The position numbers were made by a program, and so were the translations under genes. The notes under the pieces were generated by a model that saw nothing but the letters and a program-made list of their open reading frames with translations, did not search any database and had not been told where the DNA came from. A stretch of 64,000 nt of DNA from Gnetum montanum (taxonomy: Eukaryota > Plantae > Gnetophyta): positions 392,090-456,089 of the forward strand of contig MNCI01001040.1 in the NCBI GenBank assembly GCA_015680685.1, written 5' to 3'. Of the stretch, positions 5,728 through 36,500 are shown piece after piece; the stretch's first letter is position 1; every line of letters starts with the position of its first letter.

Positions 5728-6270
5728 GTATGATGTTAAACTGGCATAGAGCATCCACTATGATGTTAAAATGGCATAGATAGTACACTATGATTATAAA
5801 CTAGCACAAAATGTCCTTGGGATCTAACGTTAAATTGGCATCTATAGAAAACCCATCTGTAGTGAAACTAGCACAGCAAGTCCACTATGACTATAAATTA
5901 GCACAACATGTCATTGGGCTATGACATTAAATTAACATCCATAGCAAACCCATCCGCTATGACTTTAAACTAGCATAGCAAGTTCACTATGACTATAAAC
6001 TAGCATAGAGCATCTTTGGGCCACAATGTTAAACTAGCATCCACAGCACTCATCTACCACAATGCTTAAACTGACATAGCTCATTCTTGCATCATGATGT
6101 TAAACTACCACAACATCCACTATCTGTTACAATGTTAAACTAGCACACAATAGTCTACTAGGACTATAAACTAGAGCATCATGGTCTACCAAGGTTTTAA
6201 ACTAGGTTCATGGTTTGCTAAGACCTTAAACTAGCATAGCATGTGATCTACCAAGATCTTAAACTAGGTT
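5728..6270 (+). repeat. Tandem array C of Tat-A (~30-38 bp units, core TTAAACT(A/G)GCA) just downstream of integrase
   Basis: More than 15 recurrences of (t/a)aaact(a/g)gca with variable linkers, e.g. tatgatgttaaactggcatag. Confidence 0.9.
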
Positions 6271-12823: not shown

Positions 12824-14914
12824 TGTAGCATCTGAAAATGTCAGTGGCTAGAACACTGAAAGGTCATTAAGCACATAACCTAACCCCAAGTCCATAGGAG
12901 GGTCGTGCTAGAGAATATGGAAATGGAATGCCCTCAGTAGTCTGGTTGATGAATCAAGGACTTACGTGGTGTCAAATAACCATTCATTGATAATAGTTTT
13001 AGCACATTACATGTAGAAGTTGAAACAAGTAAGAACGTAGCATGCACAATAGTAGAAGTGTATCAATGTACATAATAGTGGTAATAAACATAAATAAATG
13101 CATGATAGTGCAACATGTATGCTATAGAAAAGTAAAATGAGAATTCAAGTAAGGAAATGCACTACCTCGAGATTGGGGGACTTGACTTTTGATTGAATGA
13201 TGGATGTGTACAATTGGAGAGCAACATTGGACAAACATAGTTGGGTAGTAGAGAAATATGGTCATAGCTTCTAGGATGCTGCAGATGTGGTGTTGATAAG
13301 CACAAATGAGCTAATTCTTGCTGGATGAAGAGTTGTTATGCTAGAGTTGAAGAGAGATTTTGGAGGCTCTAATGCTGGGATTTGCTACTCATCAGCCTTC
13401 TGCTCGCCAATCTGCTGCCAAAGCCAACTACAAAAGCTAACACTTAGAATGTTGTTTACTGGGGTATGTATAGAGCCTAGGGTTGAGAAAGAGATGTGGT
13501 TTGGATGCCACATGTCCTGGGTCCCATGTAGCATGAATGTAAACATGTCACGCTGGTGTGCTACGCTCAAAGTGTGGTGCTACGCTAATATGCTACTCCA
13601 AATGGAACAAGAGCGAGAGTAGGAATAGTTGTCCACCTATGACCACATTGCCCAGACTGCATGTGTCAAAATTTGAGACTACCACATTTTTACACAAGTG
13701 TCTAGAACAAATGCAAATTGGAGCCTATGCTCTAGGACTATGTCTTCCCTTCTCTTTCGAGTAGGATCAAGCATAGGAACAAGTTTTGAGGATCAACAAG
13801 GGGTGCAAAAAAAAAAATCAAACTACTAATATTGGTTGTCGAGGAGAAGCTAGAGTAGAAATGACCATCGACGACATGTTCTAGAAATTTTGGAGAGGTC
13901 CTAAGGATTTTTTTCAAGTGTTACGATGTCTATGCTATTCATCGTAGCAAAGTAGCGTGAACACTGGCTTGCTACATTGTGCTACGCTACATAGCGTAGC
14001 ATAGTGTAGCATCCCCCTTTGCAAATGAATGTTGTCAAAAATTGAAAATATCATTTTGAAACCCAACAGGACAAGCAACTTGAACAATTGGCAACCATTC
14101 TTTCCACATCAAAGAGCCTACGACCTCTCAATTTCATTCTTGAGACACTTTTGTCATTGATATGCCTGCTATGCTGTGTAGCGTAGCACAGTGTAGCACT
14201 TGATTTTGAACAAATTTTACATTAATCTACACTTCTCTACCATGGGACCTTGGTCATGTTCCGAGGGCAAAGTGGGACAAGCAACTTGGAGGTCAAAGAA
14301 TGGTGAAGTGTATTTTCCATGTCAAAACAACTTGAGGGAGGATTTTATTAATGTTGGCACCCTACTACACTATGCAATGTAGCATAGTGTAGCATCCAAA
14401 ATAGGATGAATTTTATGCCACTTACTAGATTTTTCCATGTCACGATAACCATACTCCAAGGATGTAGTAGGACAAGCATCCTTGGAAGTCAAAATTTCCC
14501 AAATTCTTAGAAAACATTTCAACACTGCATGCCCTACTACGCTGTCTACATTGGACAGCGTAGCATAGCGTAATAGGTCAAAAATAGAAAATTTTCCATA
14601 CTATTTTGCACATCCTAAACAATTTTGATTGCTCTTAGCTTGGTACTTGGGTGGACTGACAACTGGGACGGCCCAAAAGATACAAAAAATTGTCGAACTA
14701 CATGGTCCACCTCCAATACTCTGTTTGTGTAAACTGGCCTTGCAACTGGATGCTACGTTAACTATGATAAGGAACATAACAGAAAAGCCTAGAGAAAAAT
14801 TTGTGAATGTTTGGACTTCTAGGGTGCCCCACAATCTATGTGGCCCATCATGACACCACATTTGGAGAAATTTTACCTAAGTCTCAATGCTTGGACAAAT
14901 CTGATGTTGTTTCA
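12824..14914 (-). repeat. 3' LTR of Tat-B
   Basis: Direct repeat of 30524-32606 (about 9 in 10 bases identical in a hand-checked 150-bp stretch, mostly transitions). Minus strand starts TGAAACAAC after PPT aaagagggg. Confidence 0.95.
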
Positions 14915-16424
14915 TTAGCCCCTCTTTATCGATGTTTGGAGGATTTGCCCAAGAGATGTCAACAAAGAATACAAAACACCATGATAAATGTGACACTAAA
15001 ACCATTCATCAGTGCCCACTTAGATGATGCTTTGCTATGCTTGAGAGTGCTAGGAAAGTGTAGTATGGTAGAGAATAGTAGATGGGTTTAAGGAGATGGG
15101 GTCAAAAAAAAATGGATGGAAAAGGAAAAAATGTAGGATGCAATGCCATGAGGGCCATTTCCATGGTTTGATCCCTCATCAGAGTGCTTGTGAGGAAGTC
15201 AGCATGCATGGGTGTCTTTCCCCTTTGGATTTCAACCTCTCATCAGAATGCCTGGAGATGGTTGATCTAGAGTTGAGACAGTTTCAAAGTGGCGACTGTG
15301 CCATTTGACTTGGGCATTTGTCCTATCCGATTCTCTCTTTTTCTTTTTTTATTTTCTTTTCTTATTTCTTATTTTCTTTTTTTTAACAAATCTGCACACC
15401 CATGTCTATTTGAAGGCAACTGCAGCATCGTTGTAGGATAAGTGTTTCCTCCCCAGGATGAGTTGTGTTACATCTGTGTGGGGCTTTGACTAGCCTACAG
15501 AGGCTTCCCATGGGATGAGTTTCATTACTTCCATTATGGGATTATCAGTTAAGCATGGGAAAGGGTTACATGTGCATTGGAGAAGCTTGTGAGGGGATGC
15601 TAGAAATTACAAAGGGAGAAAATAAAGGTTGAATTGGTTGAAAAGATGTGAGGGATGTGAATGTATGCACTCTCAAGTAGCTAGGCTAATTAAAGTGGGT
15701 ACTTTGGAACAATATAGTATCCTGATCTCATGGTAGAATGCATTCTTGATCAGCACCATCCCAGCCTTATCCTGCAAACACAACAAAGAGAAAACCAGAA
15801 AAAATTATCATCATGTAAAACGAAGGTGAAGTCCGATCCACTCAAGATACAACAAAAGCTGTGAATGCACAATGTCCATAGTAGGAAGGCTAGTGTAGGC
15901 GTTGGTGATGGCAAGCTGAAAAAACTCCAGCAGCCACACTGGAAGTGAGCACTCAAGAGGCTAGAAGCAATAATGATGTAGGTGCTTAGGAATCCCCACC
16001 ACGAGCAAGAGCTAGGATATTTAGTCGTAGGGTGAGAAGCCCAGTTGCTAAATGTTCTTTCAAACTTGGATGATGGTAAGGGCTAGAGGGTAGCAACATT
16101 GTGGCTAGGCCACAATAGTGCTAGGACTCTAGTAGGAGGTGCTGACAAAGAGAGCTACAACCAAGATGATTGACAATTGTTGCGGTAGCTCTAGAAGGTC
16201 AACAAGATGTCAAAAGACATCTTTGAAAGATCAAAAACATGCCAGGGACGATGATGTTATAAATGTCCCAAACGATGTTTCCTTGACATCGTGAATTTCA
16301 TTTTGGAACTGCAATGCCCCACCCTACCTTGCTCAAGAGGCATGGCCAAGTAACAGGAGATGGAAAACATTCTTGCTTACTTTTTCACAAGGTCCCATGT
16401 GTTGAACCAGAATGGTTGCCTCAT

Positions 16425-16865
16425 GAACCTAGTTTTAGGTCTTGGTAGACCATTGAATGTGCTAGCTTAAGGTCGAAGTAGACCGTGGTTCCCATTTAAG
16501 GTCCCAGTATACCACGCTATGCTAGTTTAAGGTCCCAGCAAACTGTGATGTGCTACTTTAAGGTTCTAGCAGACCTCTGTGCTAGTTTAACATCGTAGCA
16601 GACAAGGGATGGCCAATTTAAAGTCATAGTAGACCATTCTGTGGGTGCCTGTTTCATGTCATGGCCTAAATACATGTTTTGGGTTCTAGTTTCGTGTCAT
16701 GGCCCAAAGACTTGTGCTAGTTTAATGTCATGTCAAATGCTCTGTGCCAGTTTTACGTCATAATGAATGCTTTGTGCTAGTTTTATGTCATAGTGGATGA
16801 TCTATGCTAGTTTTACGTCATAGCGGATGATTCCGTGCTAGTTTTATATCATAGTGGATGATTCT
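16425..16865 (-). repeat. Tandem array C of Tat-B downstream of integrase
   Basis: Repeated tgctagttt(a/t)a units (reverse complement of TAAACTAGCA) at about 30-bp spacing. Confidence 0.9.
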
Positions 16866-16901
16866 ACTTACCTTGCTTTATATTCAATGTGATGTTATAT
16901 G

Positions 16902-19900
16902 TTAGACATAGTAGGGCTTCAGGTACAAATGATTGACAAGATTTGGGAACTCGTTGCCATCTAATTCAGCCAGCTTGAATGCTCCATTCTCTTATGCCTT
17001 TGTGACCAAAAAAGAGCCTTCCCAGTTGGCTGAGAATGTGTTCACGGGCTCGAAAATGGCCTTGAGGACTATATCCCCATTTTTGATCAAGCATTGGTGT
17101 AGATTACAATGATGTTTCTATCGTTGCTTGTCCTAATACCACTTGATGTCATTAAGCATTTGGATGCACTCTTCCTTTGTAGAGTCAAGATCAATGATTC
17201 TTGACTTGTTATTTTGAGCCTCATCCATAAAGTTTAAGAGGATCATTCAAAGTGATAGGACCTACAATTCAAGAGGTAATACCACTTTAGATCCATACAT
17301 AAGATTATCTGGGGTCTTACCTATAGCCATTTTTCATGTTGTGCGATAAGTCCATAGCACGTAGAGGAGTTTCTCGTGCCATAGTCACTTGCTATTGATG
17401 ATCATCTTTTTTAGAGGTTGATAATTGCTTTATTAGTTGCTTCTACTTGGCCATTTTCTTAGGGATAATATGGTGATGAGAAAGAATTTTTAATACCAAG
17501 GCTTTTGCAAAAGGCTCTAGTTTCCACACTACTGAATTGGGGCTCGTTGTCTGTAACGATAGTCATAGGAAGACCAAATCGAGGTACTATGTTGTCTAGG
17601 ATGAATTTGCAAATTTTTTGTGATGTGGTCTTCCTAATGGGAATAGCCTCTACCCACTTTGTGAAGTACTCAGTTGGAGTAATGATGAAGCTATGCTCTA
17701 CAGAAGACTTAGGTGTGATAGGCCCTATAATGTCTAGTCCCCAACATTGGAAAGGCCATGTGATTTATGTGGTATGTAATTCAATAGGAAATATGTGTAT
17801 GAGGTTCCAATGACATTGACATGCATCACATGTCCTTACCTTAGCAACGCAATCACATTCCATGTAAGGCCAGTAGTAGCCTAGATGCTTAATTTTTGCT
17901 GCCATAGCCCTAGGAGCTATGTGCCCTCCACACAGTCCCTCATGGACTTGATCAACAATTTTTCATGCTCCATCCCCACTAATGCAAGCTAGAAATATCC
18001 TATCATAAGATCATCGGCATAAAGCGTCATCTCCTACAAGGACATACTGCCATGCTCATTTTCATACTACGTCCTTTTTGGCAGACGTTAGGCCATGTGG
18101 AGGCTCACCATGTTGAAGGTATGCCTTAACATCATCATACCAATCTTGGGCATGTGCTACACTGATAGATGTTGTGTTTGGTGTGTGGATGATAGGGTTA
18201 GTGCATTCCACTATTGAAGTGGGAAAGGTAGGGAACATGTGTGGTGGCACACTTAAAGCTAACGTGGCTAATGCATCGACTATAGTATTTTCTTTGCAGG
18301 GTACATATTGGACATCTAGGGTTGCAAATTGATTTAGTAAATATTTAGCCAAATCATAGTAAGGCTGTAAATGTTGTGCCTTGCATGCATAGACTTCTGT
18401 AACTTGGTTGATGACCAATTACAAATTGCCTCTAATTGCTAAGTTTTGGATCCCTGACTCTCGGGCTGCTAGAATACCCCTAAGGAGACCCTCGTATTTT
18501 GCTACATTGTTTGTGCAAAGCAACATGAAGTGATACATGAAAGGTTGAATCTCTCCAGAGGGAAATGTGATAATAGTAGTGGCATTGCCACCTGGTGTAG
18601 TTGAGGCACCATCAAAATGTAGAATAGCTTCAAAATCTGCGGGTACTAGGCTTATGCTACTAATGTGCTCATCCGGAAATTCAGGTTCTATTATTGTCTG
18701 GTCATTAGTGGGTGAAGCCATAGGTTGTGTGGCTATCACTTGAACTTTTGTAGATGACTGTGCTATGTAATGTAGGTCAAATTCTGTAGTTATAGCTTTC
18801 CACCAGGCTATCCTCCTACTTTCGTATATATTGGTTGTAATAGCCCTGAGTATGTTATTTTTGCAGATGATGTTTACTTGGCTATAGAACAAATAATGCC
18901 TCCATTTTGTAAGCACAAAAGACAATTTTTTTCTACATCATTGTATTTTGATTCATAAGTTATCAATGCATGACTCAAGTAATAGATAGGAATTTCAAAA
19001 CCATCATCCCTCTTTTGACAAAGAAAATTTGCAATAGATGTGTCTAAAGTGGTGAAATAAATGTAAAAAGGCTTATGTCTCTATGAAGGGTAAATAGTGG
19101 GAAGATGAACAAGCTCCTTCTTTAAGTTATCAAAGGGTTCCTCGCATTGGTTTGTCCATTCAAAGTTAACTCCTTTTTTAAGCAAGTGTTGCATTGGATG
19201 TAATTTATCTATTAGCCTTGCGATAAACCTTTGTATGAATTGTATCCTACCTTGCAACCCATGCAACTCCTTAAGGTTTGTAGGTGGTGCTAAGTTAACA
19301 ATAGCTTTGACTTTATTGAGGTCTACACGTATCCCCATTTTTGATACTACAAAACCTAACATGTGTCCAATTTTGACTCCGAAGATACATTTTTTGGGAT
19401 TGAGGCGGAGGTCATGCCTACAGCAATGTTGAAGGACCAGGTTTAGGTCATTTTCATGATCAAGAGATTTTTTAGATTTAACGACTATATCATCCACATA
19501 ATCATTTAGCCTTTCCAAAAGGTAGTCACTAAAAATATAAGTCATTGCCTATTAATATGTTGCTCCTACATTTTTTAGCCCGAAGGGCATCATTATGTAA
19601 CAAAAGGTTCCACAAGGGGTCATGAAGGTAGTGGCCAATTGATGTTTTGGGTTTATGTGGATTTGATTGTAGTGTGAGAATCCATCCATGAAGGATAATA
19701 AGGCATGGCCAGCTGTAGTATCAACAAGTTGGTCGATACTAGGCAATGCTAAATCATCTTTAATAGTTACTTTATTGAAATCCCAGAAGTCTATACAAAT
19801 TCATATACCCTAGTTTTCTTGGGGATGACTATGATGTTTAATACCCAATTTGCATAATTGACCACCTAGATGAACCCTGCCTGATAAAGTTTGGTGATTT

Positions 19901-20374
19901 CGTCATGCATGGCTAAGGCAATCTTTGGTTTAATCTTGCAAACTTTTTGTTTGACCACTTTGACATGTGAATCGATGATGATATTATGTTGTATTATACA
20001 TGGATCTAAGCCCAACATATCTTCATACAATGATGCAAACACTTTGATATTATCATTAACTTTAGAAATATTTTGCTGATCATATGGCTCCAATAGAAAG
20101 CTAACCTTTAATGTTCTTACCTTGCCCATAGATGTAGTTATGGGTATTTTGATAAGGGGGTCCTCAATTACATCATCGGCTTCTAAATCTAAGGCTTGGA
20201 CTAGATGTTTGGGCCAATCCAGGGATGTTTCTAAGGATGCTATGTTGGTGTCACAAGGGGGTGGTTCGAAGTCTACCAATTCTACGTTCAAGTGTCTCAT
20301 AAACCTACCATGAGGTCTTTTTAGAATTAAGGAAAAATGAAGATCATCATGCATATCCATTTTTCCAAGCACTC
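16902..20374 (-). pseudogene. pol: pol of Tat-B (RT-RH-aRH-INT), decayed
   Basis: LLSFMDGFSHYNQI, MPFGLKNVGATY, NDYVDDIVVKS, KWRHYL (RH), LHFDGAS..CTNNVAKYEGL (aRH), integrase core. Stop at 16902-16904. Confidence 0.95.
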
Positions 20375-20474
20375 TTGCAAAAATAAGCAAAACAAACAAA
20401 GTCAAGTGATACCTACTTAACACAGCAACATGAAGTAAAATGTATGCAAGGTAATTAAGCAATGTTATAAAATT

Positions 20475-20670
20475 GCCAATTTAAGATCTTAGCAAACTGT
20501 GATCATGCAAAACTATATTTTGAAATTGCTAGTTTAAGGTCTTAGCAAACCACCACTATGCAAAACTATATTTTGAAATTGCTAATTTAAGGTCTTAGCG
20601 GATCATCACTGTGATTATAGTAAAGGGAATGCCAAAATTTCCAGTTTAAGGTCATAGTGAACCATCACTA
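20475..20670 (-). repeat. Tandem array B of Tat-B upstream of pol (~52-bp units containing TTAAACTAGCA)
   Basis: tttaag(g/a)tcttagc...tgcaaaactatattttgaaattgcta repeated 2-3 times, plus a fourth core near 20645. Confidence 0.85.
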
Positions 20671-20831
20671 GGCTTACAAGTTTTTTTTTCTTGTTTTTTT
20701 TGGGACATTTATGTGCTACACTACAGGGGACATGGGGTGTCCCATGTTACATGTAGGACTTGGGGCATTCTGCGTCACGCGCGGGACATGGGACATCCCG
20801 AAAAAGTAACATGTCCTATAACCCTAATGGC

Positions 20832-20870
20832 TATAAATAGGAGTTTACCCATGGTAAACCTATCATTTTC
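20832..20870 (+). promoter_or_regulatory. Putative internal antisense promoter (TATA + Inr) of Tat-B
   Basis: TATAAATA at 20832 and TCATTTT with A at 20865 (33 nt later). Same 33-nt spacing in Tat-C (63896 to 63863, minus). Confidence 0.62.
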
Positions 20871-22080
20871 ACTATCAAAGCTAACAATCCAGAGTGTAGT
20901 GTAGCTCAAAGAGAGCATAGTAGTTGTAGCATAACCACCAATAGGCCCAAGTTTGACACCAAGGAAATGGCACACAGGAGTGAGCGTAGGCATCAGGGTC
21001 TCGCCAACGTAGATGAAGGGGAGCGCACCTTGTGGCATCTCCCTAGAGCATGCATTAAGGAATAGAAAGAGGCACCATATGCCTAGTAAGCCACTACGCT
21101 ACCTTTGTTCATGTTGTGCATTACTCTCTTTGTTTATTAATTTTTTTAGCAGTGATCTATTGAGTGGGGTTATCATCGTCATTGTCCTCGCCATGGTCAT
21201 CGTACCCTACTGGCTATGGTTGCTATAGCTACTATGCTATGGCTATTACCCCTCTTGGCTACGGTAGCTACCACAACTTCTACACTATGGCTAATTCCAC
21301 TACATTTGTGGCGGTCTCCACAACCATTACCAATGCCATCACGGCTACAACCATGGACATTGCGCCACTGCCACGGTCTCCATTGTTGTGACAAGGGCAA
21401 TGTATCATCATTTCTTTTGGAGTATTTGTAATGTTCTATGTGGTGTAGCATGTATCCTAGGTAGCATAGCATGCGTGGGGAGGGTATCCTTTTCTTTTGT
21501 TACGTTCCACACAGTGGAAGAGGGTTGGGGCCTTGCAAACATTGTGTTTTTTTTTCCTTTAGGTCGTGTCACCTTTGACAATGTGACTGACAGGCCATGT
21601 TGCATTTTCAGTGCTTGTTATGCTATGTTGCATGATGCTACTATGCTACGCTGCTATGCTATGCATGACATAGGCATTATGCTACATGGGGCGCAACCAT
21701 TGTGTTGCTACGCTACACAGGGTGTAGCCATTACACTGCACGTTACATAACCATTATGATGCACATGACATAGCCTCTATGCTACATGGGGTGTACCTAC
21801 TATGCTACTATATTGCACGTGACATAGCCACTATGCTACATGGGATGTTATAATTGTTATGCTACCAAACCACTCATGAAAGGGGGCCAAATACTTGGAA
21901 AACATTTTGGTTTTCTCGATAGTACTATGGGTGCCATCTCTCATACCTAGAAAAATTTGTATACAAGGGGGTGCTACACTATATAGTAGCATAACCAAGA
22001 TTTGGAAAAAAAAAATTTAAAAGGCTTTCCCTCACAAAGTGCCTTAATTGTAAACTAACGTTTTTTGTTGTGTTATGCAG

Positions 22081-25000
22081 GGTTATTTTGAAACCAATCT
22101 TGATCGTGATCAAGCTGGTAGGTGTTTTGTGTTGCATAAGTGCCCTATAGCTAATGTTCCCCCTCCCCATGCATGAGTAAGGGACCAAGTAGTCTAGTTT
22201 TGAGAAGGTACATAGGAATTCTTAGAATTCCTCCTTTGCCACTTTAGTGTGATGGTATGGTCACACTTGTCAACCAAGACCGTAGGTGTTCTAGTTGAAA
22301 CGTTATTGCCTAGGGCAAACTGAGGCATCATAAAGTTATGACAGATGGGTCTACTAAAGGTGAAGGGATAGGGGACTCAAGTAGACATCCAAAAGGCTTG
22401 AGACTCTTATCTTGGGTTTGGGCCATGCTTGAATTTAAGTGCTACCACAAGTACAACACCTTGTTCGCACTCGCCATATGGACACTTTTTTTCCAGAACC
22501 CACCTGGGATCATCTACTGCGTTGGTGGGTGAGTCCTATGAAGATACTTAGATATGTTATATCATTCATATTGTATATTTGGAGTGCTTATTATGTTCTA
22601 TGCGTTGTCAGATTTGTAATTGACAAGGATGATCTTCATGATAAAGAGGGGGCATTGGCCTTGGCTCAAACAGCCTTACAAGAGTTCTCTTCTACTGAGA
22701 ACATGCACGTTAGTGTCATAGAATAACTTGGGACTAACTTTAGGACCTATCCAACCAAGTATGCTAAGTTCTATATAAAATGTAAGGAACTTGGATGGTT
22801 GGATGGCAAATGGAAATTTAGTCGAGTGCCCACCATGGAGAAAGTTCTAGTGAAAGTACCACTATTCCCTATGCCATTCACACCATGTGAGTTAGGTTCT
22901 GCATGTGTTTTCATACATTCTTGATTGATCAATTTATTGGTTTTGTTGTTTTATTTTTTCTATTGATTTTATTCTTGATTATTACAGTGGCAACTGAGTC
23001 CAAAGAAGTTACCATAATCACCTCAGGTTGTATCGAAGCTAACCTCTTCTTTAAGTACAGTGAAGTTGATGAGTCACAATGCTAGTTGTGCAATGGGGCT
23101 CTAGTCACCATTGTTCAAAAGGTCCAAGAGGCTAGGCTCATGGACCTCTTTTTGGCAGTAAATCCAAGCATTCCGGTTGTGGAAATGCTTGCCCTTATCG
23201 ATTCTTTTACAGAGAGCACTAACTACTTTCGCAAACACGTCCATAATGTGTGAGTGGTATTTGAGATCACGGACAACCTTTTTTCAAATCTCTTCAATGT
23301 TCCTTCTGATGTTTTACCTGTGGAGGAGAAAGGTGGAAAATATGTAAACCATCGAGGGGACATACAAGAATGGCTGGGTACCAACAAAGATGGCAAGGGG
23401 ATTTACATGCCAAAAGTTAAATTAGAGGTAGCTCAAAAGATTTACCATGTTTTCCAGGCTCGTGCTTTTCCCAAGTCACTTTCTCAAGGAAAACTTCTTA
23501 GAGTAGAGCTAGTCGGGATTATGAGGGACATCATGGAGGAGGGGGCTCATTATAATTGGGCCAAGTATCTTTTCGAAGGCTTGCAAGTCGAAATGGTTAA
23601 GCTCCGTGACAAGCTTGATACTCATTTCAATGTGCATTTTTCCTTTTTCATAGCTTGTTTAAGATGGTTTGCCAAATTCTTGGTGGTTCAGGAGAATGGG
23701 ATCTAGGTATTACAAGATCATACCTAGATCTCTAAACCATGGATCCACTAGGTATTTCACACTACCCGATCTTAGGACCCTCTAGAAGCCATCAGGGAGT
23801 CCTTTTTAATAATGACAAAAGATCTGGTAGGACCATCTTTTCGTGCATAAGATAGCTTTAGGGAGCCCCCCCCCCCCCCCCCCCCCCCCCCCNNNNNNNN
23901 NNNNNNNNNNNNNNNNNNNCAACCTAGTAACGGTGGCACATCTTATTGTGGAAATAGTAAAGTCTAAGCTGTAACTTAAGAAGCCTCATCCTATCAAAGA
24001 GCCTCCACGTATAGGTGAAGAAAGAGGCAAAAGATTATGAATCAAAGTTTGTAATGTATAATCTACACTTGTTGGTGAGTATTCTTTGGCTATCTTGCTT
24101 ACTACTTTTTTTTTTGCATATCTTGGACTAGAATCCTAAATTTGGCTTATGTTCATTAGATGAAGAAGAGGTTTTGGCTCCTGAGGTAGAGGCCCTTGTG
24201 ATAGAAGAAGATGAGGAGGCCCCAGCTACAAAGGAGGAGGCCCCTACCACTAATGAACCTTTTGCAAACTGTGCCCTAGCACCTAAGGCACACATGACTA
24301 TTGAAGACACTGCCACACTTTTAAGTCAGTTTGAGGAAGAGGGGCTATAGTTTGAGGCTGGTGAGTTTGATGCTTTGTTTTAACAGTGTGCTGATGGGTG
24401 ATCCCCCTACTCTCACCCATGAGGGTTTGTTGGGTAGGAGCTTTGTACTTTCATTTATGTTACTTCTCACTTTCCTTTTCCTCTTCTTCATAATGCTAAC
24501 ATGCTTTGTTGCATAGCAAACACTTCTACTAAGGCTCCTGAATATTCCTCTTCCTTTTGCTTATAGCCATGGACAGAGACCCCAGGTAAATTGTTTTTTA
24601 TGGAAGGGGTAGTGGATGATATGATTGATCATTTAAAGCAAATTGACCCCAAGATAAGTGTGTTTGAAATATAGTGTTTGCTCTCTATGTTATTCTATTT
24701 TTCCATCATCTTGTAATTAATGCTTCCTTATGTTGATATAATAGCTTCTCAACTTAAGTGGGATCCAAAACAGGTGGTTGAAGTTGATGTTATGCCTGAA
24801 CTCCCTCTAGAGGTTGCTGAGGTACCTCATCATATATACGACAAGGCAAGAAAATGTGCATTATACTTAGCACGATCCTTATGGGTGTGTAGGCATGTTA
24901 ACGAAGACCTCTGGAAAAGGGTCCAAAAACTTGAGAAAGAGAAAGCAAGTCAAGCTGTCAAGTTGGAAGATTTGCAATTAAGGAATGAGTTCTTGATGGC

Positions 25001-25751
25001 TTGTGGCGCTTTAGATGGTAGTTGGCAATACGGTCGTAATCAATTATGCTAGATACTAGTCAGTCGTACAAGGTAAGAATGAGACTACCCGGGAAGTGAT
25101 TGAACAACTCTTGCAAATGGATTTAGTGGCCTAGAAAAATCAAGACTGGAAGGATTACAGTGCCAAAGTATACGAGTGGGGGAAAGCACAAAAAAATCCT
25201 AAACACATGTATAAGATGGAACGTGCTGCCTATTGTCAGAAGTATAGAGATGTATTTGTAGAATGTCGTACTCGTGAGCTATTTCTTGATGTAATTGATG
25301 CTACTCAAGCCTACAAAAAATTTGCAAAGTAGGTAATGGTGAGTGAATCCCCTAAGAGAGAGGTAACCTTGCCTTCTAGGGAGACCATTGCTGCCACTTT
25401 TTCCTAGGGCCACCTACCTGGACGACTATAGAGAAAGGAAAGATTGTGACTAGCATTGATCTAGGAGATGAAGATTGGGCAAACTTAACAAAGGAAGAAA
25501 CTCTACAATGCCTAGCGTCAGGCCTTGACAAAATACCTTTGGAGATGGATGTAGGCCCATCTCAGGTAGCTAAGCTTTAGGCCCATCTCAGGTAGCTAAG
25601 CTTTACTTTATTATAGTTTGTTGGTAAGAGCCTTATGCATTACCCCTTCTCACTTGTTGATGTATTACTTTATTTTTGATTTATGTAGGATCCACATGAG
25701 GATGTAGGACCTAGTGGCATTGCAGACAAAGGCACTAGCGAAGACCCATAG
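22081..25751 (+). pseudogene. Antisense multi-exon accessory gene of Tat-B (approximate exons 22081-22528, 22612-22886, 22988-24074, 24160-24433, 24517-24653, 24745-25565, 25689-25751)
   Basis: GT(G/A)AG-type donors and Y-rich AG acceptors bound coding-like exons (one donor decayed to ATAAGT). Exon peptides and intron positions match the Tat-C copy (e.g. NPPGIIYCVGG| vs NPPRIVYYVGG|; VDVMPELP..KCALYLARSLWVCRHVNEDLWK vs VDALPELP..KCTLSCVKALWVYRHLNEHMWK). Confidence 0.82.
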
Positions 25752-25934
25752 CTTGTTGAACATTTCTTTTTTTCTTTAAATTATAACCCCTTGTTGTGAG
25801 GCAATGTTGCCATTCTAAGTATGGATTTAAGTTTGGACTGTACATTTGCAATTTAATGACACATGAGAGGCTTATCTTATTTTCTTCAGTTAATATTACA
25901 TATATGTATATTTTTTTGATGTACTTGGGCCTCT

Positions 25935-26110
25935 TGTAGGCCCCATCACTAGTTTTAGGCCATTTTGGGCCATTGCTAGTTTTAGGCCATTTCGGGCCAT
26001 TGCTAGTTTTAGGCCATTTTGGACCATCTCTAGTTTTAGGCCATTTCAGGCCATGCCTATGGAGAGTGGATGGCTAGTTTTAGGCCTTGGTAGGTAGTGT
26101 AGTAGTTTAA
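25935..26110 (-). repeat. Tandem array A of Tat-B (24-bp unit ggccattgctagttttaggccattt) between the protease and the 3' end of the antisense gene
   Basis: 4-5 near-identical units visible at 25948-26050. Confidence 0.9.
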
Positions 26111-26241
26111 GGGCATTCCAGGCCTGGGCATCTAGCTAGCATGAAAAGTAAAATGATGCAACATTGAGAGTATACAAATAAGAAATTGTACAAACAAAAA
26201 TGCTAAAAAAATAAATAAAAGATGCTCACTGATAGTGAGCC

Positions 26242-29200
26242 CTAATCGTGTAATTGTCTCCTAACCCGATGTGACTTAGGTGAGGTGTATAGCTTGGAAG
26301 TCTTGAGATGATATTCTTCTAAGCTATCATCCGCCGTTTGAAAGGGTGATTCAGCCCACATGGTTTCTTTTTGTAAGTTGGTGGTTTTGGCTGACTCATT
26401 GGCTGAACATCAAATTTCAGTATGGATAGGTAATATGTCCTCAGAGATTTCTATCTCTAATCCTTGCTCCATGTTTATATTGTTTATAGCCCTAGGGGCT
26501 ACATCATCACCAAAAATCACCACCTCTTCGCCTACGTAGTGTAGGTGGATTTCTTGGTGTATAGGTGAGGAGATAGCCCTTAACTGGGCTAACCATGATC
26601 TTCCCAAGATCAAGTTAAATCCTAGCATTTCCTCCACCACGATAAGTTCTGCATTGGTGGGAAACTAGTCCCATACCACAAAATTAATCATAATAGTCCC
26701 TTTAACCACGACAAGTGCCCCATTGAATGACTTTAAACAAGAAGTTTTTGTGGGCTTAATCTGATCTACTAGGACCAACTTGTCAACAATGAGAAATGGA
26801 ATCACATTAGTTGCAGCTTCGTCATCAACATGCATCCTACAAATTTTGTAATGACCTGCATAGATTGTTATAAACATGGGGGCAATTGTTACCTAACCTT
26901 TTTTCAGGGTCAACTTTGATGGCTTTGTCATGAAAAACTAGATGAGCTAGCTAGGATTCTATCTCCATAGATGGAAGCATAACAGCATGGATGGCTCTCT
27001 CCTCTACTGGCATGTTTTCACTAATAAGGATGGATGCCAGCATACGAACCAAAGCTTCACAATGGGCCACAAAAGTCATTATTAAATCATACAAGCTTAA
27101 TGTTGTATTTTTTTTGTTTCAAATCCTGTCTAACTTGTGAAAGCACATCTAGAAAGTCTTATCCACCATCTAGTTGTTTGCTGATTTTTGCTTCTTCTAT
27201 ATGCCCTAGAAGACGAATCTCCCAAGGAGGTGTGGCTTTGGACTGGACAATGACCTTTTTTGGATCGGGGGGTGGGGAGGTGTGGGATAGTTGCATATGT
27301 GTGTCAACACCAGTGTCTTTTGCTAATGAGGTCATAGGAATTGCTAAAAAATGGGTGGGCCTCAGGGGTCCTAATGCAATACATTCTCTAGCCAACCTAT
27401 CTACTAGGCATTCATTACATTTCCTTGGATGAGAAGGTTGGGATGTAGTTCCCACCACTAGACTTTGAATGGGTGATGAATGTGTAGGCTTTAGTACCCT
27501 TATAATGAAGGGTGTCTATGTTGTTGGGGCAGTGCGTTGAGGGACATTTAATACGAAAGGGGTAACAAGCCCTTGTGGTGATGTCTTAATGACAAAAGAG
27601 AAATGTTGTTGTGTTGTTGAAGCTTCAACCCTCTAAGAAGGCACATGGACTACAAATGGCTTGTGTGTGGACTCCATATTATCATTAACGCTAATAGCTT
27701 TGATAGTGTAGCCTGGACTATTGGCATTCAATGGGTCTTTGTAAACATTCATCAACTAATTTTTGGGTCAAATAGGACTGGTTTCATCAAGGACCAATTT
27801 ACCTTAATCAATCATGCATTGAATGTCATCTTTTAATGGTAGGAAATAGTTAGTATCATGATTTCACAATTGGTGATAGTTGCAAAATCGTTCGAGCCTA
27901 AAATTTTTAGGCATAGGAGGCTTGTTAGGTGTGGCTATAGAGGGGTCACAAAGGATTTCATAATATCTCTCATGCCACTTACGAGCCTCTGCTAACATTC
28001 TCTTAAACTAGAATATGTCCAACATTTAGGAGTTGGTCCAACAGCTCTGATAACTTAATTAGCAATGGAGTATATTTGGAGCGATCCTTACACTTAAAAT
28101 TTTTCCTTGGTGTAGTTTGTGTCATGGCCATCGACGTTGTAGGTTGGCTAACCCCCGTGTTGCTAGAGCTTGATTCTTTGGTAGCGATAGTTGTGGCTTT
28201 AGGTACTTTGGTAGGTTGTTTGTTGTTGGGCATAGTTTCATTGAACACAGCGGCCACAATGGCCTTTCCCTTTTCTTTCTCTTTCTTCGTGTATGCATTT
28301 TTGTAAGTTACGTAAGCCAAGTCTTTACTTGCTTCTACTGCATCTTGTATACTTTTTGTTTGTGCAAAAGCTTGACTAAGGGAATGTAGCACTAGGTAAT
28401 ATAACCTAGATTTGATGAAATCATTTACAACCCCTTTAAAGATAGCAAGTAGATGGGATTTGGCGATCAGTTCATAGATTTCATTTAGAGTAGCACTCCA
28501 GCATTGTATAAATTTTTTAACAATTTCTAATGGTTCTTTTTTAATATTCATAATCTGATCTAGGGTAATTTCTGACTTCAAGTTATACTTGAAGTGAGTC
28601 ATAAATTGGCTCAACAATTCTTCTAACTTTGAAATTGATGCACAAGGAAGCGTGTGATACCAATCCAAATCCTTGCAAGTCAAGGACATGGCAAAGACAC
28701 AAATGATGACATGTGTCCATGATTGTAATAACAAGGATTTAGATCTAAAGGTAACTAGGTGGGCGTTCAAATTTCCCTCTTCATTGTATTTTGTAAACTA
28801 GGGAAGTTGCACCCCAGGGGGCAATGTAAGTGGAGGAAAAACCGAGCTGATTAGGTCATCATGGTAAAAGTCCATTACTTGGACCATTTTAGAACCAGTA
28901 GCTTTAAGCTGCTTAACTTCATCCATGAGGGTTTGGATAAGCTAAAAGGCTTGGTCCAGTCCTAGAGATGTTACAGGAGGTTGCATGAACTAGAATGCTT
29001 GTGGAGTTGCCAAAGCTGCCATCATTGGAGGTGCTACTAGTGTAGCAACCAATCCCATCGAAGGTGTTGTGGGGGTGACTCCCACTAATGGGACCACCTG
29101 AGCAGCCCATAGCCTAGTGGGTGGTGCTACTGGAGTGGCTACCATTGGTGGTGCCATGGGAATGGTTACATGCCCAGTTGCTAGGATGGCCCATAGCCCC

Positions 29201-30073
29201 GTGGTTGATTACACCATGTGTGATGCTTAATACGTGTGGGGCTACACATATTGCAGCATCTAAGATGCTTGAACCATAGGAAAAGAAGTTGCTGGCCACC
29301 ACACAGTTGAGGTGGGGCCTACTATTGATGATGAAATGGATACAAAGGACGTAATAGAAGCGGACTTATATACAATTATGATGTGGGCATGATATGCACA
29401 TAGGGCAGTGTAGGCATCACAAACATTGAATGTGCAACTTAAATGGACTAAGAAGGAATGATAAAGGGGAATAAAGTCGAAGGACCTGCATGCTTTTGTG
29501 ATAATAGCAGTTGATAACTACCCATCACCATGGAGGGTTTGGGATGTGGCAGTGTTGTGGTAGTCATAAAAGAAGTAGAAGATTGTGACTAGCGTGAATG
29601 AAAGATGGAGTAGACTGAGTAGCTATAGTATAGATAGGGCCACCACCTTTAGAGTGGGATTCTAACTCCTCTTGCCCATCATGAAGGGGCTCATCATAGT
29701 GAGATGTGGTGTCCCATTCTCTTGACCCATCCAATTGCACAAGTTGTTTTAACAGCCATTGAAAGATTTTAGTGAGTAGGATGGTGGTCTCAAGAGTAGG
29801 AAGGAACTTCCTTCTGTTTTGATGAATAATTTCAAAATTACGCTTTTCCTCAAATTCATGACAATCTAATGGTAGGTTTTCTTGGACTTTTACACATAAG
29901 AAGTTGTATCGCTCTTCGTCATGAGGCATACGTTTGGGCGATTTATGTTGTAGCCAAAGAGACTACTACGGTATCCATATTGGACTAAGTGGTTGCTCGT
30001 GATCCATCCCATGTTGTAGGGGATGAGCTATTTCTAGGACGAAAGTGGTGGGTGAGGTGTTGGGTGGATTCAT
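26242..30073 (-). pseudogene. gag: gag-protease of Tat-B, decayed
   Basis: Gag core (LP*FTKYNEEGNLNAHL..F..DWYHTLP), Tat-type CxxHxxxxH knuckle (~27850-27890), protease RMHVDDEAATNVI..FNLILGRSWL. Candidate ATG 30073, stop 26242-26244. Confidence 0.9.
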
Positions 30074-30487: not shown

Positions 30488-30516
30488 CGGAGGTTCAAGC
30501 CCTCATTCTAGTGCCA
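30488..30516 (-). promoter_or_regulatory. Primer-binding site of Tat-B complementary to tRNA-Asn(GUU), unusually long
   Basis: + strand cggaggttcaagccctcattctagtgcca resembles the plant tRNA-Asn 3' end (recalled as CGGAGGTTC(A/G)A(G/C)CCCTCCTTCTAGCGCCA); lies 7 nt from the LTR end. Confidence 0.8.
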
Positions 30517-30523: not shown

Positions 30524-32606
30524 TGTAGCATTCGAAAATGTCAATGGTTGGAACACCAAAACGTCATCAGGTGCACAACCTACCCCGAGTCTACAGGAGG
30601 GTCATGCTAGAGAATATAGAAATGGGGTGCCCTAGGTAGTCTGGTCAATTAATCAAGGACTTACGTGGTGTCAAATAACCATTCGTAGATAATAGTTTTA
30701 GCACATTACACATAGAAGTTGAAACAAGTAAGAACGTAGCATGCACAACAACAGAAGCATATCAAAATACATAATAGTGGCAATAAACACAAATAAATAC
30801 ATGATAGTGCAACATGTATGCTATAGAAAAGTAAAATGAAAATTTGAGTAAGGAAATGAGCCACCCCAAGATTGGGGGACTTGACTTTTGATTGAATGAT
30901 GAATGTGTACAACTAGAAAGTAGCGTTGGACAAACATATCTAGGTAGTGGAGCAATATGGTCATAGCTTCTGGGATGCTACAGACATGGTGTTGATAGGC
31001 ATGAATGAGCTGATGCTTGCTGGACAAAGAGCTGTTACGCTAGAGTTAAAGAGATATTTGGAAGGCTCTAATGCTAGGATTTGCCGCTCATCAACCTTCT
31101 TCTCACCAATCTGTTGTCAAATCCAACTACAAAAGCTAACTCTTAGAATGTCATTTACTGGGGTATTTATAGAGCCTAGGGTTTAGAAAGAGATGTGGTT
31201 TGGATGCCACATGTCCTAGGTCCCATGTAGCACGAATGTGGACTTCTCACGCTGGTGTGCTATGCTCAAAGTGTGGTGCTACGCTGATATGCTACTCCAA
31301 ATGGAACAACTATCCAACTATGATCACATTGCCCAAACTGCATGTGTCAGAATCTAAGACTACAATGTTTTTACAAGAGTGTCTAGAACAAATGCAAATT
31401 GGAGCCTATGCTCAGGGACTACGTCTTCCCTTCTCTTTCAAGTAGGATCAAGCGTAGGGACAACTTTTGGGGATCAAAAGAGGATGCAAAAAACAAATCA
31501 AACTATTGATCTTGGCTATTGAGGAGAAGCTAGAGTAGAAATGACTGTTGACAACATGTTTTGGAACTTTTGGAGAGGTCCTGAGGCTTTTTCTCAAGTG
31601 TTACGTTGTCTACGCAATTCAGTGTAGCAAAGTAGCATGAACACTGGCTTGCTAAGCTATGCTACACTACACAATGTAGCATAGCATAGCATCCCTCTTT
31701 GTGAATGAATGTTGTCAAAAACTAAAAATATCATTTCGAAACCTAGAAAGACAAGCAACTTCAAAAATTTGCAACCATGCTTTCCACATCAAAAGAGCTT
31801 GAGACCTCCCGATTTCATTCTTGAGACACTTTTGTCCTTGATATGCCTACTACATTGTGCTATGTTGTGTAGCATAGCATAGTGTAGCACCTAATTTTGA
31901 ATGAATTTTACATTAATCTACACTACTCTACCATGGGACCTTGATCATGTTTTGAGGGTAAAGTGAGACAATTAGCTTTGGAGGTTGAAGAATGGTGAAG
32001 TGTGTTTTCCATGTTAAAACAAATTGATGGAGGATTTTGTTAATGTTGGCACCCTAATCCGTTGTGTAGCATAGCACAATGTAGCATCCAAAATAGGATG
32101 AATTTTTTGCCACTTGCCAGATTTTTCCATGTCATGCTAACCATACTCCGAGGATGCAACAGGACAGGTGTCCTTGGAAGTCAAAAATTACCCAAATTCT
32201 TAGAAAACGTTTCAGCACCACATGGCCTACTATGCTATCTACATTGTACAGTGTAGCATAGTGTAACAAGTCAAAAATAGAAAATTTTCCAAACTATTTT
32301 GCACATCCTAAACACTTTTGACTACTCTTAGCCTGGTACTTGGGTGGACCGATGACCAAGATGACTTGAAAGATAGAAAATTTGCTAAACTGCATCGTCC
32401 ACCTCCAATAATCTGTTTTTGTAAACTGTCCTTACAACTAGATGCTATCTTAACTCTGCTAAGGAATGTAACAGACAAGCGCAAAGAAAACTTTGCAGGT
32501 GTTTGAACTTCCAGGGTGCCATGCAATCTGTGTAGCCCATCATGACACCACATTTAGAGAAATTTTACGTAAGTCTTAATGCTTGGACAAATCTAGTATT
32601 GAGTCA
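30524..32606 (-). repeat. 5' LTR of Tat-B
   Basis: Direct repeat of 12824-14914; adjacent to the PBS; outer terminus is degraded. Confidence 0.93.
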
Positions 32607-33565
32607 TAAGAGTCAAAAATTAATGGTATTTCATTTTGTTATTTTGTGAAAGAAAATATGACCTCTCTGGCACTTGGATTCAACCTCACATGTAGCTATG
32701 TTCTTTGGGCCAAGAAAATGGATCCACTCTCACCCATCAAACTAATTTTTCAAGCCACCTCATTAAGGTGACTCATGGCTAGTTTGTAGATGGATGGATC
32801 CTTTCCACCCATGCCTGCTCATTTCTCTTATTCACTCAAGAGCCATTCTTTATATACTCACAACCATTGGGTAATTTCAATGATGTCTGGCATAATTGTT
32901 TGAGTCGTAGGTGGAGATGGTGGTTGCTACTCCTCTTCATGAATAGTTATGATGGGCATTTTATCCTTAATAATTTCTACCTAATTGGAAACTAGAATAG
33001 TTCTGACAGTGTCATTGGTGTACCAAACTATTCCTCCCCTTAGATAAAGTTTCTTGATGAGGCATAGAAAGGGGAGTTCCTTCCTTTTGCATTCATTTTC
33101 TTTAAACTGCTTCTCCATCTCTAGATAGATCATCTATGGAAGGTTGACTAAGAATCTTTCACTCAAAGCAATCCATGGTCAGGCAAAGAAGGTAGTGATT
33201 TTGCTTAGCCTCACCATGGGATTGAGATGGAAGGCTGCAATTGTATAATGGATCCTCCTTATTGGTGTGAGTGCATCAAATTCCTTGTGATCAAAAACAT
33301 AACAATGCTGCACCCATTCTTTCTTTATGCTTAGATCCACCTACATTAGAATTCTAGTAAGATTTTTCCTTGTTTCGAGTAGCCCAAGTGCTGCAACAAT
33401 GGCTTAAACCAAGTAGGATACTAAGATGTCCTTGATTTTCATCATTACTCTACGCTACCTATTGTTCTAGAATAGGAATGTTTCTCCCATGTACTAGTCC
33501 CTAGTGAAAGTGATGATTGGCCACTTGAAAGAGGCCTTCAATTGGTCCTATACTTCTCTTGATGC
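32607..33565 (-). pseudogene. Middle part of the Athila 3' extra ORF (continues from 37056-~37400 after removing the solo LTR)
   Basis: Joining across the gatgc/ggtgc TSD gives a continuous coding-like frame (..ELNFDPFLEHAPSREV*DQLKASFKWPII..). Confidence 0.55.
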
Positions 33566-36500
33566 TGAAACACCACCAAATTTAGGCAATAACACCTCAA
33601 TGGCAAATTTGTCTAAGTGTTAACATGAAGCAAATTTTTTTTGAATGTCTAGTCCATGCTTCCACTACTAGGACTATGCTCTATAGCATAGTCAGCATAG
33701 CATGCATCACAAAGCTAGATTTGCAAAATTTTCAAAGTGTTAACAACAATTGCAAAAGTTTTTTTAAGTGTCATGCTACACTTCCATTCTCTCGCTACAC
33801 TCTAGAGTGTAGTTAGTGTAGCATGCACTTCAGTGGCTAGTTTGCCTAAGTGTCAAGCTAGGAGCCATCAAGCTAGCTCAGCATGGAAGAAATAGTTTGG
33901 CAGATTTTCTAACTCCTGGGGCTACCCCTTCTACTATGCTTCATAGCGTAGCTAGTGTAACTTAGATAAGGACTGCAAGTTTTGCTAATTTTTTCTAAGT
34001 GTCAATGCTATGCTCTAACTTTTCCTACTATGCTCTAGAGCATAGTTAGTGTAGTTGGCATTGGACTTTAATTCTTGTAGAATTTGCCTAACTGTTAGGC
34101 TATGCTCCAGAGCATAACTAGCATAGCAATGTAGGATAGCCTCCAAAAGCTTCCAAAGCTCAACACCAATCTTTGAAACACCACAAAATGTTGGGTCTCA
34201 GCATCTCAACTACAAATTTAGCTGTGTCAAAATGGTGGCACTTTGCCCAAATTTTTCCAAGTGTTGAGTGGAGTTAGCTGCAACTGCCGTATTTGCACTT
34301 TTTTTCTAAGTGTTAGAACAATGGCACTTCCTAGAAATTTGTCTAAGTGTCACAACTTGGAAAATTTTCCTAAGTTTTGGTGCTATGCTCCCTAGCATAG
34401 CCAATGTAGCATACATTGAGCCCTGTTTTGCAAGATTTTTCTAAGTGTCAATAGCAGTTTCATAAAAAAATTTCTAAGTGTCCTGCTATGCTCTCACTCT
34501 ACCTACTACACTCCCTAGTGTAGCTAGCATAGCACACACTTCCATGACCAATTTGCCCAAGTGTTAAGCCAGAAGTGGTCAAGGGTCTCTTGGGATGAAT
34601 GAAATAGTTTGGCAAATTTTCTATCTCTTCAGTTGCTATGCTCTATTATGCTCCATAGCATAGCAAGCATAACATAGGTTCCAATACCCAATTTTTCCTA
34701 AGTGTTGGACAAGGATCTATCAAGCTAGCTCGACATGGAAGACACATTTGGTAGATTTTCTAACTCTTGAGGCTAACCCTCCTACTATGCTCTAGAGCAT
34801 AGCTAGTGTAGCAAGAGCAAGGATTACAGTCTTCACCAGATTCTTCTAAGTGTTCATGCCACACCACATGGGATGAGTGTAGCAACCAGTGTCCTATGTC
34901 CCGCATGTAATACAAGACAAGCATAGCAGCCAATGTTCCATGTCCTACATGTAACATGGGATGAGTGTAGCAAATAGTGTCCCATGTCCCACATGTAACA
35001 TAGGATGAGCATAGTGACCAGAGTTAGAAAATTTTTGAACTTTTTCTAGTCACCTTCGAACATAAAAATTTTCTAAATTTTTCTTCTGGTCCCACCTATC
35101 GCACTACCACATTGCACCCAATCTACATTTTGGGCTAACCCTAGCAGTATAAATTCCCCTACACCCCAATGTTTTAGGGGGGTGGGTTAGCTTCCATTTT
35201 TCACAAGTTGTGTAGTTAGCACATTCATTTTGGCATTTGGCATTTTGGCATCTTGGCACTTATCTCCATGGGAAAATGATACCTAGAGCACACCACACCA
35301 GTAGAGAGGGATCCCTACATCACATCGTACACAATGGCCCTATTGCAACCTTGCACCGCATAGTACACCGCAGCTCCATTGTAGTCCTGCACCACATGGT
35401 ACACCATAACCCCATTGCAACTTCCCAAAATACCACATGGTACATCGTGGTGGCCAACTCAATTGGCAAGTTCATCATGGCAAGCACCAGACTTCACAAC
35501 CCGAAAACATCAAGATTTTGACTACACTTCCACTATGCTTGTTGTGCACTATATACTTTCTAAGATCCTTTTGGAGTTAACTACATCCCCATTTGTGGTG
35601 GTACACTTTTTTTCTCAAGTTTCATTGCATTTCTCAAGAATTTCTTTTTGGTATTCAATGTAACACTTGTATTTTCTCACTATTTCATACATATTTGCAC
35701 ATTTACATCGTTGTTCCTAGGTAGGGACACCCTGCTATGCTCTACCTTAGTCAACCCTAGTGCCTACATGTAACTCTACATAAACTCGACCCCCCACACA
35801 CAATTTTGTTAACACCATGTAAGTCTCTATCTAATCAGCCAGACCATTCAAGGCACCTCATTTTCGTTTTCCAACATGGCCCTCACATGGATTTGAGGTT
35901 AGGTTGTACATCCACTAACCTCTCGATGTTCCATCCACTGATGTTTTTGGTTGTTACAATCTTTATCTCAACTTCAACATTCCTCTGGCAAACATGATTA
36001 GCAAGTTGTATTTCTTTTGCACCCCCCATTTGTCCCAAAATTGTACATATTCTTAATCCCACTCGAAAGAGGGAAGCACGTAGTCCCAAAGTGTAGCCTC
36101 CAAATTGCATTGTTTTGCACTATTTGTAGGTACATTGTGGTCTTTTCAACTTTGGCACATGCAGTCTTGGTAGCACAGTCACAATCTAGTAGCCTCTCGA
36201 GGTCAATTAAAGCACACTAGAGTGTAGCACCAATTGCTTCAATGGGAGCATAGTTGGGCTAGCATAGCCTCAACTACCCCTTTTGCAACATGGTGCCTGA
36301 TCCACATTTCAAATCAACCCTAATCCTATAAATACCCCTACATTTCATATTTTAAGGGTTGGTAAATCAAAAGCATGGTTGGAAGTCCTTGCATTCAATT
36401 GGCAAACCCAAACATCATTTAGCATTTGAGGCATTTGAAGCACCCTGCACCCCTAGAACACTTCGTACCTTGGAAACACCTTTGCACACCACTCAACATC

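Follow-up and report, generated by a model that had tools for sequence, protein, structure and literature searches.

Probable Tat-type retrotransposons of Gnetum montanum with a predicted multi-exon antisense gene between protease and reverse transcriptase

The window analysed here is a stretch of 64,000 nt from Gnetum montanum (GCA_015680685.1, contig MNCI01001040.1, positions 392,090-456,089, forward strand). Self-comparison of this window delimits, by a pair of long terminal repeats (LTRs), a single minus-strand LTR retrotransposon of ~19.8 kb, termed Tat-B, in which the gag-protease (PR) region is separated by 5.9 kb from the region coding for reverse transcriptase (RT), RNase H (RH), additional RNase H (aRH) and integrase (INT). 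A predicted multi-exon gene of opposite orientation lies within this PR-RT interval. Two further copies in the window, Tat-A and Tat-C, are oriented on the plus strand. The features of Tat-B other than the exons and introns of the antisense gene are as follows.

12824-14918, minus strand: 3′ LTR, direct repeat of the 5′ LTR, with a purine-rich tract immediately upstream on the sense strand
16460-16865, minus strand: third tandem array, after INT, with the same core as the other arrays
17462-20371, minus strand: pol (RT, RH, aRH, INT), degenerate, identified with Pfam; 68.8% nucleotide identity to Tat-A 2354-5810
19084-19800, minus strand: RVT_1 (Pfam)
18422-18937, minus strand: RT_RNaseH (Pfam)
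18065-18418, minus strand: RVT_3, taken as aRH (Pfam, E 8e-4, 19.7 bits)
17462-17764, minus strand: rve, INT (Pfam)
20372-20383, minus strand: pyrimidine tract and AG, splice-acceptor-like; counterpart in Tat-A at 2204-2215
20443-20673, minus strand: array A, made up of 53-nt units whose sense strand carries a TTAAACTAGCA core; aligns to Tat-A 1963-2055
20674-22080, no strand assigned: fast-evolving spacer without similarity between Tat-B and Tat-C, with a degenerate internal array at 21646-21865
25943-26077, minus strand: array B, made up of 27-nt units whose sense strand carries a TAAAACTAGCA core
26242-29962, minus strand: gag-PR, degenerate; open reading frame (ORF) pieces 29567-29962, 28006-28797, 26668-26892 and 26413-26664
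30492-30516, minus strand: stretch of 25 nt beginning with TGG that resembles a primer binding site (PBS), 7 nt past the end of the 5′ LTR, read by eye
30524-32610, minus strand: 5′ LTR, 84.4% identity over 2.1 kb to 12824-14918

The domain order found by Pfam in Tat-B is RT-RH-aRH-INT. The additional RNase H, a trait of the Tat clade, is recognized by a weak RVT_3 match, the score of which is slightly below the 21.6-bit cut-off because the Tat-B copy is degenerate. Its position between RH and INT is that seen in Ogre and Retand, for which the order RT-RH-aRH-INT has been given (PMC6317226), and a 2026 survey lists the same order for conifers II, Taxus, Ginkgo, gnetophytes and ferns (PMC13468544). 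The gag-PR region of Tat-B has 64-67% nucleotide identity to Tat-C 54789-57326, and motifs of plant gypsy gag and of retropepsin are visible by eye in its translation. There is no Pfam match for gag, and the protease call rests on motifs, position and conservation with Tat-C; Pfam is known to be weak at recognizing gag and protease (PMC6317226). The complement of the PBS-like stretch resembles a tRNA 3′ end (acceptor, T-arm and CCA), and its 25 nt exceed the usual length of a PBS.

On the protease side the PR-RT interval is bordered by a terminal TAG at 26242-26244, upstream of which a gag piece (28006-28797) and a PR piece (26668-26892) are in one frame. On the other side, similarity between the pol coding sequences of Tat-B and Tat-A begins at Tat-B 20351 and Tat-A 2245, ~25 nt past the acceptor-like site. 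A preliminary description of the locus had placed the end of PR at ~26242 and the start of RT at ~20374, and these coordinates prove correct to a few bases. Between the borders lie array A (20443-20673), the spacer, a plus-strand gene (22081-~25751) and array B (25943-26077). No sense-strand ORF within the interval has a match in Pfam.

The other two copies contribute the following features.

54789-57570, plus strand: Tat-C gag-PR, terminal TAG at 57568-57570
57852-58145, plus strand: Tat-C array after PR, core motif as in the other arrays
58462-62003, minus strand: antisense gene of Tat-C with exons 1-7 and introns, colinear with Tat-B
62004-64000, no strand assigned: Tat-C spacer, truncated at the window end; its segment 63539-63800 corresponds to Tat-A 1332-1610
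1-2215, plus strand: Tat-A spacer end with an array (1973-2054) and an acceptor-like site (2204-2215)
2245-5810, plus strand: Tat-A pol, RVT_1 at 2938-3306

In Tat-C the order is the same as in Tat-B: the PR stop, which is four codons off the place aligned to the Tat-B stop, is followed by the array, the antisense gene (62003-58462, minus strand) and the spacer up to the window end. Indeed, ~3.5 kb of Tat-B (22049-25567) are colinear with Tat-C 62041-58574 at 57-59% nucleotide identity. In Tat-A, spacer and array precede pol; a 280-nt spacer segment is common to Tat-A (1332-1610) and Tat-C (63539-63800), while array A and the acceptor region are common to Tat-A and Tat-B. The spacer match places the start of RT in Tat-C at ~64400, just beyond the window end, and gives a PR-RT interval of roughly 6.8 kb. 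Furthermore, LTR-like sequence is common to Tat-A and Tat-C, but the Tat-B LTR is different, so that the layout occurs in at least two subfamilies. The LTR-like sequence is found in three stretches (33566-36859, 7944-9472 and 52423-52806; 70-74% identity), corresponding to the terminal part of Tat-A, the initial part of Tat-C and one additional site; this site may be a solo LTR or a further member of the A/C subfamily.

This recurrence of array, acceptor, spacer and gene order across Tat-A, Tat-B and Tat-C, three separately inserted and strongly diverged copies, indicates that the architecture is very likely a family trait. The preliminary description had likewise seen in the three diverged copies a family trait and not a one-off insertion, with the Tat-B order repeated in Tat-C and the spacer and array before pol in Tat-A, and the alignments bear this out on each point. 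The layout reads LTR, gag-PR, array, antisense gene, spacer, array, RT-RH-aRH-INT, array, LTR, and is probably that of a Tat-type Ty3/gypsy family. The PR-RT interval is the element's own and is copied along with it.

A foreign origin of the interval, by nested insertion, by an assembly join at an N gap or as a host gene between retrotransposon fragments, is suggested by the N gap and poly-C run inside it and by its lack of Pfam content. Such an origin is extremely improbable, however, given that the same order occurs in Tat-B and Tat-C despite different LTRs and only 57-67% identity, that Tat-A and Tat-C have a spacer segment in common, that the flanks of the N gap are colinear with Tat-C, and that the LTR pair of Tat-B encloses both halves of the element. 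Moreover, the terminal inverted repeats (TIRs) to be expected of an independent module were looked for at the ends of the Tat-B interval, and neither these nor an LTR or other terminal direct or inverted repeat was found. A nested transposable element was rejected on this lack of terminal repeats and on the sharing of the layout among copies.

N runs occur in the window at 867, 23893-23919 and 63138, the second of them within exon 3 of the antisense gene. In a global alignment of the modules, Tat-B 23865 pairs with Tat-C 60224 and Tat-B 23920 with Tat-C 60203, such that 54 letters in Tat-B (27 C and 27 N) stand opposite ~20 letters in Tat-C. The colinear flanks show that the two sides keep the order and orientation seen in Tat-C, with little, if any, sequence lost. 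Homologous coding picks up directly past the gap with a changed nominal frame, and no reading frame can be traced through the gap itself. Another poly-C run, with 69 C at 798-866 followed by the N at 867, lies within Tat-A. The two runs (798-866 and 23866-23892) were considered as homologous sequence and rejected, both being on the plus strand although the elements are oppositely oriented; they look like artefacts of assembly or basecalling at joins.

The antisense gene is modelled from the alignment of Tat-B and Tat-C as follows, with coordinates for Tat-B.

22081-22528, plus strand: exon 1, with a conserved branch-like CTAAC ahead of it, together with a pyrimidine tract and AG at 22080
22529-22611, plus strand: putative intron 1
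22612-22886, plus strand: exon 2, from the Tat-B/Tat-C alignment
22887-22987, plus strand: putative intron 2
22988-24074, plus strand: exon 3, with an open piece of 150 aa (23254-23703), the assembly gap and a 297-codon ungapped match to Tat-C
23866-23919, no strand assigned: poly-C (27) and N gap (27) within exon 3, flanks colinear with Tat-C 60224/60203
24075-24159, plus strand: putative intron 3
24160-24433, plus strand: exon 4, acidic, indel-rich, inner structure uncertain
24434-24516, plus strand: putative intron 4
24517-24657, plus strand: exon 5
24658-24744, plus strand: putative intron 5
24745-25338, plus strand: exon 6, best conserved (38-53% at the amino acid level to Tat-C), coiled-coil-like by eye
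25339-25407, plus strand: putative intron 6
25408-25565, plus strand: exon 7, from the Tat-B/Tat-C alignment
25566-25688, plus strand: putative intron 7

Exons 1-7 total ~2.9 kb, and an apparent further exon starts after exon 7 at 25689. The branch-like site, pyrimidine tract and AG ahead of exon 1 indicate that another exon lies upstream in the spacer, where the promoter and first exon of the gene are presumed to be in Tat-B. Coding on this strand is favoured by several comparisons of the two copies. The tblastx chains reach a sum E of 1.7e-160 on the antisense strand as opposed to 4.8e-87 on the sense strand. Codon-position identity follows the order second, first, third position in all six gap-free blocks (0.69, 0.54 and 0.38, respectively, in the 297-codon block), and the BLOSUM62 sum is highest in the antisense coding frame in 6/6 blocks. 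Over 629 codons the rate of nonsynonymous substitution (dN) is 0.47, whereas the synonymous rate (dS) is saturated (undefined by NG86, 2.5 by LWL85); the remaining five frames have dN/dS values of 0.3-1.5. In addition, stretches of ~900 nt and 480 nt are free of indels between copies that are only 54-55% identical. The codon-position bias, the dN below a saturated dS and the indel-free stretches therefore point to a protein-coding gene kept under purifying selection. Coding on the sense strand of the module was rejected, as its tblastx chain is weaker and the other frames have dN/dS near 1 or a shadow pattern.

Both copies of the gene are pseudogenes by now: the long block is interrupted by 7 stops in one and 9 in the other, and single-base deletions occur in Tat-B. 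Two frame changes in Tat-B are such one-base deletions relative to Tat-C and not introns; the first five blocks of Tat-C share one frame. Between the coding blocks, by contrast, each copy has seven intervals of 69-123 nt that open with GT and close with AG, and these correspond in position in the alignment. Their T content is 45.5% in Tat-B and 43.9% in Tat-C, compared to ~30% for the gene span, a value reached by 0/20000 and 2/20000 random interval sets, respectively. Identity between the copies is 45% in the putative introns and 53% in the exons, and gap columns amount to 12% and 3%. A perfect 26-nt tandem duplication in Tat-B (25552-25603) duplicates the donor-like site of putative intron 7 and is absent from Tat-C. 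To judge by the comparison of the copies, the antisense strand of the interval carries a predicted gene of at least eight exons that was under purifying selection while the subfamilies diverged, and this gene is likely a real multi-exon one. The oppositely oriented multi-exon gene of the preliminary description is thus upheld by codon-position pattern, dN/dS and the GT..AG intervals aligned in both copies.

The module is bracketed by tandem arrays, of which each element has three: directly after PR, directly before RT and after INT. With up to one mismatch allowed, the motif TTAAACTRGCA has 38 matches in the window against 5 expected. All but one of the 38 lie in tandem arrays, always on the sense strand of their own element (1981-2053, 5736-6236, 16460-16846, 20474-20649, 25974-26011 and 57866-58117); the lone match outside arrays has one mismatch and falls in the gag region of Tat-B. 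The degenerate array in the Tat-B spacer (21646-21865) consists of ~50-nt units rich in CTATGCTAC and is not found in Tat-C. From their placement the three arrays could be cis signals, or else seams left when an ancient rearrangement brought an antisense extra ORF (eORF) from the 3′ end into the polyprotein region. Taken further, the latter idea makes of these elements a non-autonomous fossil family, in which template switching between the similar arrays, for instance, reshuffled the eORF and the copies were multiplied in trans by other elements, so that the split has no logic of expression. Arrays with one core motif exactly at the module borders and after INT would fit such an origin, as would the degenerate state of every copy in the window and the 3′ antisense PMD eORFs known from Tat III and Tat V (PMC4408406). 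However, pol, gag-PR and the antisense gene are all colinear in coding similarity between deeply diverged subfamilies, and the dN of the eORF is well below dS, as expected if the proteins mattered to the copies that multiplied. A fossil family of this kind is therefore very unlikely.

For a functional split, a mode of expression similar to that of Ogre can be proposed. The full-length unspliced RNA would serve as genome and as gag-PR messenger, while pol would be reached by splicing the whole interval out of part of the transcripts, with the conserved pyrimidine tract and AG before pol as the candidate acceptor. In Ogre, the PR-RT interval of ~274 bp has been shown experimentally to be spliced from part of the transcripts (PMC6317226; see also PMC4408406), and plants can splice introns of 5-10 kb (PMC5575664). 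The antisense gene would rely on a promoter of its own within the spacer, and its transcript would be spliced. The introns of the gene would survive retrotransposition, because the genomic RNA is their complement and they cannot be spliced there. As to function, the encoded protein may be accessory or regulatory and akin to those of the PMD/coiled-coil eORFs in other Tat elements. Whether pol is indeed expressed by splicing of the giant interval is an evenly balanced question; the acceptor side is backed by conservation, but the donor side is not.

Several observations weigh against the reading of these elements as a functional family with a spliced split and a multi-exon antisense gene. When Tat-B and Tat-C are aligned, no convincing conserved 5′ splice site is found upstream of the gag-PR stop; in Tat-B a G|GTTAGG-like site (26260-26268) precedes this stop, but the aligned letters of Tat-C are GA. 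Stops and frameshifts are present in all three copies (Tat-A, Tat-B and Tat-C), with no intact member in the window. The protease of Tat-B has no match in Pfam, the PDB or a word-based search. The intron boundaries were chosen by eye, and the exon map is a model. As to the product, which was searched exon by exon, Pfam scans of ten exon pieces from Tat-B and Tat-C, with E values up to 10 admitted, gave no relative, a PDB sequence search gave no match, and phmmer with the 150-aa open piece against 1.84 billion representatives returned one match, a tandem-repeat protein, which is taken as spurious.

The missing conserved donor makes an internal promoter for pol a serious rival to splicing. In this case the architecture would be the same, but a sense-directed promoter within the spacer or array A, perhaps forming a bidirectional pair with that of the antisense gene, would yield a separate pol messenger, or pol would be translated from an ATG of its own. 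The spacer must hold at least one promoter, and ATG codons are present in Tat-B at 20349-20360, right after the acceptor-like site. These ATGs are not conserved in Tat-A, though, while the pyrimidine tract and AG are kept in Tat-A and Tat-B exactly at the start of coding similarity, and Ogre elements, the nearest known relatives, splice the PR-RT junction (PMC6317226). Expression of pol from an internal promoter or its own ATG is thus considered unlikely, and splicing is preferred.

Read by eye, the antisense product consists of a globular part at the N terminus, an acidic stretch and, at the C terminus, a part resembling a coiled coil. No significant profile match to PMD (PF10536) or DUF1985 (PF09331) was found among the ten exon pieces of Tat-B and Tat-C, and a word-based protein search with the product gave no match. 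An AlphaFold single-sequence model has a pLDDT of 53, too poor for a fold search. Protein Atlas returned plant hypothetical clusters, including a DUF1985 cluster (0.89) and a PMD cluster (0.84), both of them sub-threshold, unconfirmed leads. Degeneracy and fast evolution may hide a kinship to PMD/DUF1985, which we regard as possible, with the balance leaning against it.

We take the family to be of the Ogre/Tat kind; its layout is real and shared. Ogre (Tat IV), known from pea and Medicago, is similar in its giant size, in a gag-PR ORF that ends in a stop and is set apart from RT-RH-aRH-INT, in the placement of aRH and in having an extra gene and internal arrays (PMC6317226, PMC4408406). However, Ogre has a non-coding interval of 274 bp on average, compared to 5.9-6.8 kb with a gene here, a length ~20 times the Ogre mean. 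In Ogre, a sense-oriented eORF precedes gag and frequently matches PMD in Pfam, whereas here a 5′ eORF and a PMD match are lacking: no Ogre-type sense PMD eORF is found upstream of gag, where ~560 nt separate the LTR end (30524) from the first ORF piece (29962), and no Tat-B or Tat-C piece scanned matches PMD in Pfam. The RT differs as well, since the best outside match is a Taxus fragment and not an angiosperm element. Outside matches to RT are fragments of at most 51% identity, the best-scoring one coming from Taxus chinensis (47%), and the search gave no close match to a well-sampled angiosperm element, a mere hint that the host is not a flowering plant.

An antisense accessory gene in a Tat element is known from Tat III, which occurs in gymnosperms, and from Tat V, in the form of a PMD or PMD-coiled-coil eORF (PMC4408406); PMD-coiled-coil eORFs have been described for Tat IV and V by Ustyantsev et al. 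(PMC4408406). The impression of a domain followed by a coiled coil and the weak Atlas leads to DUF1985 and PMD add to this likeness, which is a resemblance by eye. The eORFs of Tat III and Tat V are single ORFs between pol and the 3′ LTR, whereas the gene described here is multi-exon and lies inside the polyprotein region; moreover, aRH follows INT in Tat III but precedes it in Tat-B. Retand, Grande and RIRE2 (Transposase_28; gene23 in Grande) also combine an antisense gene, driven there by a promoter of its own, with tandem arrays in an extended internal region (PMC11963269). In these elements the gene is placed between pol and the 3′ LTR, encodes a TRP28 domain, which is not found here, and has no reported introns (PMC11963269). 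In Tat-B, no plus-strand ORF of at least 80 aa that could correspond to a Retand-type 3′ antisense ORF occurs within 14919-17460 outside the LTR edge, and TRP28 has no match in the pieces scanned, which did not include the short ORFs of 14919-17460. Among retroelements outside plants, HTLV-1 likewise has a spliced accessory gene in antisense orientation, HBZ (PMC1459196), the introns being predicted from sequence in our case. HBZ belongs to an animal retrovirus, starts in the 3′ LTR, has one intron and shows no sequence relation.

The contrast drawn in the preliminary description, with a short Ogre interval (~274 bp on average) and antisense eORFs located at the 3′ end, agrees with these reports (PMC6317226, PMC4408406, PMC11963269). 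Full-text literature searches of incomplete coverage returned no description of an element with a gene between PR and RT. We tentatively suggest, at slightly less than even confidence, that the copies represent an undescribed, probably non-angiosperm Tat lineage, in which an Ogre-type intron has grown to 6-7 kb and houses a needed antisense gene of ~1000 aa with at least eight exons.

If so, this would be a retrotransposon with a multi-intron gene inside its own polyprotein region, whose introns would escape loss owing to their orientation. It is well known that introns outlast the RNA phase of a retroelement only when antisense, and the family would be a natural case of this principle. With regard to expression, it would extend the splicing strategy of Ogre ~20-fold. 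A conserved accessory gene of ~1000 aa without recognizable relatives raises the question of its role for the element, for example in regulation or in escape from silencing. In genome annotation, a family with such a layout would be split, or else called nested or incomplete, and it may form a large mis-annotated share of a giant genome.

Outside the Tat elements, a direct repeat of 960 nt (10096-11046 and 45234-46189, 82% alike) is unrelated to them and may belong to another repeat family. The region between the Tat elements at 38000-52000 is AT-rich, with a GC content of 26-36%, and an ORF at 51243-51683 resembles a Ty1/copia gag by eye.

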